A DNA stretch of 64,000 bases from the NCBI RefSeq assembly GCF_001447785.1, contig NW_015167061.1, positions 193,889-257,888 of the forward strand. The letters run 5' to 3'. The DNA comes from Gekko japonicus (taxonomy: Eukaryota). The notes beneath the pieces are model-generated. The model ran no database searches and was not told where the DNA came from. It worked only from the letters and a program-made list of their open reading frames with translations. A program made the translations under genes and the position numbers. How positions within the stretch are numbered: position 1 is the first letter of the stretch; every line of letters starts with the position of its first letter. Below, piece after piece: positions 44,101-47,100 of the stretch.

Positions 44101-47100
44101 CAACCATCGACATCCATATGAATCAGATCAACTTTGAGCGCGAATGGTACAAGTTCCTCCTGGACTACATCGCGCCCATCACAGAGAAGCTGTACCCCGG
44201 GTACTACACCAAAGTAAGGCCCGTTTCAAAACCACTTACTTTATTAGCAATACTTATAAATAACAACAACAGCAAAATTATCATGGTATTTGGAAGACAT
44301 GAACGGAGCTGTATTTCGACAATCAAAGGAGAGCAAGCGATAACAGTGCAGTAACAAGCGGTGTTCTGTAGATGGCATAATTAAATCAGTAGGCAAGGAT
44401 GTGATAGCATCACACCTGAATGATTAATTGAAGTATTTAAATATTTAAGGCTGCTTAAATGCTACTAGGAGCTGCGGTGGCTCAAGTGGTTAAGACGCTG
44501 AACTGCAGGCTGTGGAAGGTCGGTAGTTCAGCAGTTCGAGACCTGAGTTGCCGCATGACGGAGTGAGCTCCCGTCTCTAGTTCCAGCTCCTGCCAACCTA
44601 GCAGTTCAAAAGCAAGAAATTGCAAGTAGATAAATAGGTACCACTTCGGTGGGAAGGTAACAGCGTTCCGTGCACCTCGGTGTTTAGTCATGCCGGCCAC
44701 ATGACCACGGAAACGTCTGCGGACAGTGCTGGCTCTTCGGCTTTGAAACGGAGATGAGCACTGGCTTGACTGGCTTTCGAGCAAGGGAACCTTTACCTTT
44801 ACCTAAATGCTACTTTAAGTATTTCAGGCTACTTAAATACATCAGAATGGAGCTGTATTTCAGTGGTCTCTGAGGTATTTGCTATGTAGAAGTTTCTGTG
44901 GATTCAGAATGAATTCTGAAGTTAGTTGTATAAAATGGATCGTTTGTAATCTTAAGCTTAGAAATCAGGAGGTCCCAGACAGTGTTACCTCTAAGCTGAG
45001 ATAGTGTGAGCTAGCTCACAGTTTTTTTAAAGTATTTTATTAGTTTATATATAGAAAGGGAAAAGAAAGTGTGCGTGTGTATATATATAAGTCCAGTTTA
45101 ACATTCTGCATGCAAATCTTCTCATAAAAGCTTCTCAGCTATTATAATCTTTCTTGCTATTCTTCATTTAATCTTAGTTTCTCTATACTTGTGTTTTAAC
45201 CAGTCATAAAACGCCCTCCATTGTCCAGCTAGCTCACAATTTTTTAGCCTCCGGCTCACACGTTTTTGCCTTCGCTCAGGAAGGAGGGCTCCAGAGCAAA
45301 CTGACTTATGCACCAGCCAAATCGCTCGCTCACAACTTGAATGCCAGGAGCTCACAAAGTACAATTTTTGCTCACAAGACTCCACAACTTAAGAGGGAGC
45401 ATTTGTCCCAGATTTAAAGAAACCATTTAAAAAAAAATCCAAGCTCCTCTATTATCTTCCAAAAGGCTTGGTAATGCTTCGCTTTCCCTCCGCTGTCCTC
45501 CTGGCTGCCTCTCAAGCGTCGCGGTGCCACGTAGGGTAAGGTAAGATTCATGGTGTTCTCTCTTCCCCCGCAGACCCAGTTCGAGCAGCAGTTTGTATCC
45601 CCCAAGTGGTCCCAGTATCAGAAGTGGATCTAGGGCTTAGAGTTTCGTTGCATTCTTTTTTGTTGTTTCCTTCTACTTTTTATGCCTCATTTCGTTCTGC
45701 TTTCTCCCCAATTGTCAGAAACTCGAACCTCTTCTTCTCTTCTCCAATTTTTATCTTCCTCCTCACTTCTCAATATTCGAAGACACAATTACATGAATAT
45801 GGTTTACCGCGATACAATAAGTCAAAAATTTCTAAAGCACAATAATGACTGAGCTATTAACTAAGACAGCTGTTTATGCTAGTTTTCCTAAAAAAAAATT
45901 TTTTTTCCTCTTTCTTTCTTTTTGGAAAAATCGATTGTTAAAATAGTTACTTACTATGTTTGGATTTGGTTACCATCTATGTACTATTGCAAAATTCAAC
46001 TTGTGTATTCAGTTATCATTGTTATGGATTTGCTACTGTTATCAATAAAAATTTTTTTTTAAAAAAGTGTCACGGTGCCATGTAGGGTAAGGTAAGATTC
46101 ATGGTGTTCTCTCTTCCCCCGCAGACCCAGTTCGAGCTGGCCTTTGTGGTTCGGTATAAACCTGACGAGCAGCCATCGCTGATGCCGCACCATGACGCAT
46201 CCACTTTCACCATCAACATTGCCCTGAACCGTGTAACGAAGTAAGTCCCTGCAAGGATCTTTCTGCCGGGGGAACCTTCTGACGAGATGGGCAGCTCCGT
46301 GGCTGGGAGAGAAGAGGCAGCCTGGGTGTAGGTTTGGGGGGAGGTGTAGGCCCTGTACCCCTCTTGCCAGCTTCCGATTGACCCTTCAGGAAAAGGCACT
46401 TGCTGACCAGTGTTCCATCTAAGCTGAGTTACCGTGAGCCAGCTCGCAGTTTTTTAGCCTCCGGCTCACACCTTTTTGTCTCAGCTCAGAAAGGAGGGCT
46501 CCAGTGTTCCCTCTAAACTGAGTTAGTGTGAGCCGACTCACAGTTTTTTTAGCCTCTGGCTCACACCTTTTTGTCTTAGCTCAGGAAGGCAGGCTCCAGT
46601 GTTCCCTCTAAGCTCAGTTAGTGTGAGCTGGCTTGCAGTTTTTTAGCCTCTGGCTCACACCTTTTTGTCTTAGCTCAGGAAGGATGGAGCTCTGGAGCAG
46701 ACTAATTGATGCAGGAGCCAAATCGCTGGCTCACAACTTTAATGCCAGGAGTAGCTCACAAAGTGGGATTCTTGCTCACAAGACTCCGCAGCTTAGAGGG
46801 AGCATTGCTGCTGACTGTGGTTGAAGACCCAGAAGTTCAAAATTTTGGCAACCTCCCCAATGAATTTCCGGGAAAACAGATAGGCAGGGGGTTGTTTTTG
46901 ACATCTGTGTGTGTGTGTTCGATGCCGTCGAGTGACTTCTGACTGACAGCGGCCCTATGAATTAATAGAACAAAGTCTGAGTCCAGTGGCACCTTTAAGA
47001 CCAACAAAGTTTTATTCTGGGCATAAGCTTTCATGTGCATGCACACTTCTTCAGATATCCGAAGAATCTGAAGAAGGGTGCGTGCCCACAAAAGCTTCTA

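Follow-up and report, generated by a model that had tools for sequence, protein, structure and literature searches.

A probable retro-insertion with a 73-nt target-site duplication copied the exon 18 splice acceptor of PLOD1 in Gekko japonicus

The stretch of DNA analysed here, 64,000 nucleotides (nt) of Gekko japonicus (the window; contig NW_015167061.1 of assembly GCF_001447785.1, positions 193,889 to 257,888), contains a gene on its + strand in which the 3′ splice site of exon 18 is present twice, once on either side of an insert. The gene encodes XP_015268038.1, the G. japonicus PLOD1 protein, exactly: 739 of the 740 residues were placed by exact 6-mers, and the remaining residue is a split codon. 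Homology searches were run exon by exon. A phmmer search with exon 17 against 1.84 billion representatives led to frog PLOD1, and word searches from frog PLOD1 led to gecko PLOD1 proteins from Paroedura, Heteronotia, Eublepharis, Euleptes and a second Gekko, among them XP_060115287.1, XP_077168253.1, XP_056720894.1 and XP_054857940.1. When these gecko proteins were used in tblastn, 18 exon matches were obtained between 20142 and 47906. Pfam PF03171 and PF25238 were both matched, exons 18 and 19 corresponding to the 2OG-Fe(II) oxygenase, and exon 19 matched solved structures of LH3 with an E value of 2.4e-25. Judged by these matches, the gene is PLOD1, coding for lysyl hydroxylase 1 (LH1) with its predicted C-terminal HxD...H oxygenase domain.

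The boundary between intron 17 and exon 18 is contained in a direct repeat of 73 nt, whose two copies start 551 nt apart and are identical at 70 positions (Table 1). The limits of the repeat are exact, as position 74 differs (A at 45587, T at 46138), and the number of such pairs expected by chance in 64 kb is about 4e-29. The copies differ only at 45517 (C/T), 45521 (G/A) and 45530 (C/T), and each of these mismatches is a CpG in the upstream copy and a TpG or CpA in the downstream copy. There are six CpG sites per copy; all six are kept upstream and three have been lost downstream, so that 3 of the 12 CpGs have decayed, and the 61 non-CpG sites are unchanged in both copies. Each copy consists of 60 intron bases and 13 bases of exon 18, and includes a branch-point-like TTCAT, a pyrimidine tract, the AG and the start of the exon. 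On a consensus reading, the branch-point-like A of the upstream copy is at 45550, 23 nt before the G of the AG. Relative to the acceptor the differences fall at -57, -53 and -44, all upstream of the branch-point-like site, and the sequences are identical from -43 to +13. The two 3′ splice sites are thus identical in every recognised element. The duplicated segment also contains the motif GGGTAAGGTAAGA (45533-45545 and 46084-46096), which consists of two overlapping strong donor-like sites 33-38 nt before the exon 18 acceptor, an odd placement so near a 3′ splice site; from its sequence the motif may be a U1-binding element.

The insert between the two copies is 478 nt long and has a G+C content of 32%, compared with 52% in the flanks. 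At its 3′ end, AATAAA is followed by AA, a run of nine T and a run of six A (46059-46064) that abuts the downstream repeat and is extended by an AA common to the repeat. The distance from AATAAA to the tail is 15 nt, and the signal lies in a U-rich and GU-rich downstream context. No copy of the insert was found elsewhere in the 64-kb window, the insert did not match Rfam, and its reading frames, including the longest, matched neither Pfam nor a protein; at most 15 codons of possible coding sequence are left, too short for a protein search. A first-pass annotation of the same DNA had reported a 73-bp segment with the pyrimidine tract, AG and 13 exon nucleotides repeated 551 bp apart, three CpG-type transitions as the only differences between the copies, and an insert ending in AATAAA and an A tail. 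We recovered the same coordinates exactly, found the same differences site by site, and placed the signal at 46044.

Table 1. Features of PLOD1 exons 17 to 19 and of the insertion at exon 18 (window coordinates; a slash marks the splice junction)
Feature	Coordinates	Strand	Description
Exon 17	44067-44213	+	tblastn match; residues 588-636 of XP_015268038.1; ends TACACCAAA, phase 0, donor AAA/GTAAGG
Upstream copy of the target-site duplication	45514-45586	+	TTCAT 45547-45551, AG 45572-45573, 13 exon 18 bases; complete 3′ splice site, apparently unused or rarely used
Frame after the upstream acceptor	45574-45633	+	19 residues, then TAG at 45631-45633
Insert	45587-46064	+	Probable 5′-truncated, sense-oriented, AT-rich retrocopy resembling a 3′ untranslated region (UTR); low-copy
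Poly(A) signal and tail	46044-46064	+	AATAAA 46044-46049, AA, T9, residual A6
Downstream copy of the target-site duplication	46065-46137	+	Working exon 18 acceptor, AG 46123-46124; backed by the canonical mRNA contig (run X4)
Donor-like motifs AGG/GTAAGG and AAG/GTAAGA	46087-46100 (upstream counterparts at 45536 and 45541)	+	Candidate sites from consensus scoring only
Exon 18	46125-46240	+	Begins after cccccgcag; 116 nt in the window; HxD (HHD) iron ligands 46188-46196; donor GTAAGT
Exon 19, coding part	47754-47909	+	Distal iron-binding His, 2-oxoglutarate-binding Arg region, stop

We think it likely that the insert is a low-copy, 5′-truncated retrocopy made by target-primed reverse transcription, that its integration duplicated the acceptor, and that the downstream copy has stayed the working acceptor and the upstream copy belongs to a latent terminal exon. 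A polyadenylated RNA (the 3′ end of a cellular mRNA being the likeliest source) would have been copied in the sense orientation into PLOD1 intron 17 by target-primed reverse transcription, with an L1-type enzyme acting in trans. The first nick would lie 60 nt upstream of exon 18 and the second 13 nt inside it, and fill-in of the 73-nt stagger would have duplicated the branch-point-like site, pyrimidine tract, AG and 13 exon bases. Because the stagger was so long, exon 18 would have been rebuilt intact downstream of the insert and the gene would have survived. The upstream copy, together with the in-frame TAG and AATAAA, would then form a latent composite terminal exon, used rarely or never.

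Several features of the sequence are best read together as a retrocopy signature: the exact flanking duplication, the poly(A) signal 15 nt before an A tail present at one end, the 5′ truncation, the 3′-UTR-like composition and the low copy number. The poly(A) signal, tail, duplication and low copy number also point to an mRNA as the source. Mobilisation of cellular RNAs in a poly(A)-dependent manner is a property of L1-like elements, and for this reason we infer an enzyme of the L1 type. L1 cell-culture assays have given duplications of more than 100 bp, so that 73 nt is rare, not unheard of. The first-pass annotation had considered 73 bp unusually long for a target-site duplication, and rightly so by comparison with the usual 7-20 bp (PMC3219598) and with the 10-20 bp of apurinic/apyrimidinic endonuclease (APE)-type long interspersed nuclear elements (LINEs) (PMC6895275).

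To compare the window with independent reads, four public runs, of DNA and RNA, were mapped on 43400-48400 at 90% likeness, a threshold at which other copies of the insert can contribute reads. In all four the sites of difference from the window are the same (about 1-2.4%), and there are also several indels of about 10 nt; the data therefore come from a close but non-identical lineage. The best DNA run holds 0.51 of the sampled 31-mers, which fits a divergence of about 2%. The nearest public data thus represent a diverged population or sister species, distinct from the reference animal. Contigs of another organism (X16) gave zero depth on the exons, probably through a filter on conserved sequence, and uneven depth elsewhere.

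In the DNA run X1, a contig of 446 nt (record 6, depth 92.7) starts within the insert at 45996, crosses the downstream repeat and exon 18 unbroken and ends at 46431; it shows two substitutions and 10 gap letters relative to the window. Since this contig runs across the right junction without a break, that junction is not an assembly artefact. Depth over both repeat copies was 72-109, compared with 71-98 in nearby unique sequence, and the repeat was rejected as part of a dispersed element on this single-copy depth. Over the insert the depth was 216-266, compared with the same 71-98 for single-copy sequence, which gives two to three copies at a likeness of at least 90%. The 3′ end of a LINE or short interspersed nuclear element (SINE) was also considered as the identity of the insert, and was rejected on this copy number of 2-3x, as compared with 1e4-1e5x for the neighbouring SINEs. 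Two X1 contigs lie along the insert, one at 45680-45874 with four differences, the other at 45680-45832 with 13 differences and one gap (about 8.5% diverged). The former is probably the orthologous insert, and the latter probably a parent or sibling copy. The insertion predates the lineage split of about 2%. From the decay of 3 of 12 CpGs with 61 non-CpG sites unchanged, its age can be put roughly at a few to perhaps 20 million years.

Use of the downstream acceptor is indicated, indirectly, by a contig of run X4 (record 19, probably RNA; 1574 nt, depth 225). Its positions 1427-1574 align with 44066-44213 and its positions 654-1300 with 47754-48400, so that exactly 126 nt, as many as make up exon 18 of other geckos, separate the last base of exon 17 from the canonical first base of exon 19. 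On this evidence the dominant mRNA is canonical, with exon 18 joined at the downstream acceptor. Canonical mRNA dominates in a sister lineage that carries the insert. X4 depth on the insert was 7.4-8.7 (one 328-nt contig at 6.4), compared with 1.1 on the unique intron just upstream. Among the raw RNA reads of run X21, three bins of the insert gave 0.95, 1.63 and 0.24 (about five 100-nt reads, or about 1.0-fold), the unique bins of intron 17 gave 0 and 0.09, and exons 17 and 18 gave about 11-14. This insert RNA may come from the low-copy relatives of the insert, as reads were accepted at 90% likeness. The splice joints listed for the runs were mostly SINE-derived and included neither 44213>45574 nor the canonical 44213>46125 and 46240>47754; 2725 more joints lay outside that list. 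As the first 13 exon bases are identical in the two copies, an informative junction read has to extend at least 14 nt past the acceptor. Beyond the shared bases the upstream acceptor reads into the insert, AGCAGTTTG, and the downstream acceptor into exon 18, TGGCCTTTG. Our reading is that the upstream acceptor is used rarely or not at all.

In vertebrates, a short exon is recognised as a unit through its 3′ splice site and its donor (exon definition). Behind the downstream copy lie a short exon, of 116 or 126 nt, and a strong GTAAGT donor, and this copy would be expected to win. Behind the upstream copy, the 478 nt of the insert contain no donor-like site; those met next, at 46087 and 46092, are only 33-38 nt before the real acceptor and would be too near it for a workable intron. 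The upstream site would instead need terminal-exon definition by way of AATAAA, and use of that signal could be damped by U1 small nuclear ribonucleoprotein binding to the motif GGTAAGGTAAGA some 45 nt beyond it. By established splicing rules, these features would account for the upstream site being ignored. The first-pass annotation had proposed that the retro-insertion created a ready-made truncated terminal exon. Its retro-insertion with a copy of the whole acceptor is supported, but 'ready-made' was an overstatement, since the downstream copy would be favoured by exon definition. Its account of the upstream site agreed with ours in other respects: the acceptor is identical to the downstream one (from -43 to +13), and translation in the phase of exon 17 gives 19 residues before the TAG. 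The product would be an LH1 of 655 residues with none of HxD, the distal His or the Arg region, and its transcript would find a poly(A) signal already in place.

A number of observations weigh against a latent retrocopy. No parent RNA was found for the insert. The nick target, CTCTC/AAGCG on the top strand, reads 5′-GCTT/GA on the bottom strand; this pyrimidine/purine step has only two T and resembles the L1 consensus TTTT/AA weakly, that consensus being mammalian and perhaps not the gecko's. The A tail is short, at 6-8 A, and is preceded by the run of nine T. None of the contigs listed spans the left junction, from the intron through the upstream repeat to the insert. RNA on the insert amounts to about 3-9% of exon depth and exceeds that on the unique intron beside it, which would also fit low-level use of the upstream acceptor. 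Finally, the RNA data come from the lineage about 2% diverged from the window and not from the reference animal.

One alternative is that the upstream acceptor and the poly(A) signal of the retrocopy form a genuinely used terminal exon, so that an appreciable amount of the 655-residue LH1 without catalytic ligands is made, either as a by-product or as a regulated isoform. The upstream site is transcribed first, is identical from -43 to +13 and has no disabling change, and the context downstream of AATAAA is U-rich and GU-rich. The stop codon would lie in the last exon, so that by the established rule the transcript would escape nonsense-mediated decay, and insert RNA was deeper than the flanking unique intron in two runs. 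The canonical contig dominates, however, with an X4 depth of 225 compared with 6-9 on the insert, and the approximately five X21 reads on 478 nt may derive from other copies of the insert. No joint from exon 17 to the insert was among the joints listed, and no transcript end at the poly(A) site of the insert was among the ends listed. The best 120 PLOD1 proteins from two word searches, a list in which a gecko form of 655 residues would be expected near the top, included no truncated isoform. There are also too few sites for a lack of disabling changes to mean anything. We regard appreciable use of this terminal exon as unlikely. It is quite improbable that the alternative terminal exon is a working one retained in evolution, so that Gekko species make a stable, catalytically dead LH1 fragment, with its N-terminal glycosyltransferase-like and accessory domains and a stub of the hydroxylase domain, that has its own function or modulates LH1 dimers. 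If true, a long target-site duplication would have produced a new isoform in nature in a single step.

The missing parent transcript, the weak endonuclease consensus and the short A tail after a T run could also be accounted for by an origin at the DNA level, either as foreign DNA captured at a staggered double-strand break or as a local duplication split by an unrelated insertion. But AATAAA lies 15 nt before an A tail that is exactly at the 3′ end of the insert and abuts the repeat, a clean duplication directly flanks the insert, and the insert is AT-rich like a 3′ UTR and low-copy. Target-primed reverse transcription typically leaves just this combination, and we consider a DNA-level origin very doubtful. 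That the duplication is an artefact of short-read scaffold assembly is extremely unlikely: the window does come from a gapped assembly with seven runs of N, and the same exon has a suspicious 10-nt deletion, but the copies differ at three sites that are all CpG transitions, and data diverged by about 2% yield one contig joining the insert, downstream copy and exon 18 as well as contigs along the insert, so that the duplication is real, as the first-pass annotation had argued from the CpG differences.

Returning to the latent retrocopy as the preferred reading, exon 18 itself requires separate comment. It is 116 nt long in the window and 126 nt in other geckos (..NxVGIDYE/GGGC..). Relative to these, the window lacks 10 nt (GGNATHGAYT) before ACGAA/GTAAGT (46225-46245). 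The protein model XP_015268038.1 keeps the frame by using an acceptor at 47712, which lies 42 nt before the canonical exon 19 and adds 14 residues (47712-47753). As a result the model has 16 residues in place of GIDYE inside the catalytic domain. The mRNA contig of the sister lineage has the full 126-nt exon 18 and the canonical exon 19 acceptor, and its DNA contig over 45996-46431 carries 10 extra letters relative to the window. It follows that the deletion is either confined to the reference lineage or animal or an assembly error. A word search with the exon 18 open reading frame returned only other species, among them the gecko-like P0309 and P0310 (..NRVGIDYE), and none with the Gekko intron prefix. 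The first-pass annotation had taken the insertion as a second independent hit on exon 18; this does not hold generally, since the deletion is present in this assembly and the NCBI model and absent from the sister-lineage mRNA. The retro-insertion coexists elsewhere with an intact, expressed PLOD1, and to take it for half of a two-step loss of the gene would be a misreading.

The surrounding introns are rich in other repeats. Introns 17 and 18 (44402-45403, 46406-46906 and 47408-47741) are full of one SINE family (D1-D3), made up of periodic units of about 95 nt, and the copy number of this family is enormous in the DNA and RNA runs (X1 depth 1e6-1e7). At 46984-47138 a hairpin of about 145 nt matched the mir-3688 and mir-559 models on both strands (50 vs 84 bits, below gathering scores). 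Because its DNA depth is very high, it is probably a palindromic transposon resembling a miniature inverted-repeat transposable element rather than a microRNA gene. Upstream, intron 16 is covered at 43627-44095 by an X4 contig (record 18, depth 28, compared with 225 for the mRNA) and by raw reads, which suggests appreciable retention of intron 16.

Insertions of this kind are known elsewhere. In the mouse mutant chagun, a processed Cenpw cDNA was inserted into exon 8 of Poc1a by L1-mediated retrotransposition with a 15-bp duplication, resulting in exon skipping and disease (PMC4619696). The gecko insertion resembles it in that a copy of a cellular polyadenylated RNA, with poly(A) signal, tail and target-site duplication, would lie at an exon of another gene. 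The chagun copy is antisense and nearly full-length, has a duplication of only 15 bp and disrupts the exon, whereas the gecko copy is sense and 5′-truncated, with a duplication of 73 nt, a rebuilt exon and normal mRNA. In canine merle, a SINE is inserted at the boundary of PMEL intron 10 and exon 11, and the 15-bp duplication contains the original acceptor (PMC7349775). The gecko would share with merle a retroelement insertion at a 3′ splice site and a duplication that takes in acceptor sequence, and in each the making of normal protein depends on which acceptor is chosen. The merle SINE is antisense, however, and its poly(T) puts more distance between branch point and acceptor and switches on a cryptic site within the SINE. 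In the gecko a second acceptor, complete and with a branch-point-like site of its own, is found 551 nt upstream, and the alternative to normal splicing would be premature polyadenylation.

Retroelements in the sense orientation are known to create intronic polyadenylation and composite terminal exons, usually by way of a cryptic acceptor or read-through of an upstream exon. The gecko insert likewise adds an AATAAA to an intron, by which the transcript of the host gene could be cut short, but the acceptor in front of it is, by sequence, an exact copy of the authentic one. Tandem duplications of splice sites were reportedly studied in beta-globin constructs in the 1980s. A minisatellite in intron 7 of F7 naturally repeats a 5′ splice site (PMC1557585). 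These systems and the gecko have in common that identical splice sites compete in cis and that exon context and position decide between them; those sites are engineered or are 5′ splice sites, whereas the gecko has a natural, evolutionarily retained duplicate of a 3′ splice site. What sets the gecko case apart is the length of the duplication, the regeneration of a complete second acceptor, and its tolerance and retention; the kind of event is a known one. It is an unusually tidy but essentially ordinary insertion, and no new kind of mechanism is involved.

For annotation, the duplicated acceptor is a trap, since aligners can place junction reads on either copy of the repeat, and gecko PLOD1 models need checking at exon 18. 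For splicing, the locus is a natural test of how a 3′ splice site is chosen, since the animal has two acceptors 551 nt apart that do not differ between the branch-point-like site and +13, and apparently prefers the downstream one. For the gene, it indicates that a retro-insertion at the edge of an exon can be fatal or harmless to the gene depending on how long its target-site duplication is. Had the stagger been the usual 7-20 bp, with the second nick unchanged, exon 18, the exon of the iron-binding HxD, would have been split; a stagger of 73 nt would have rebuilt it.

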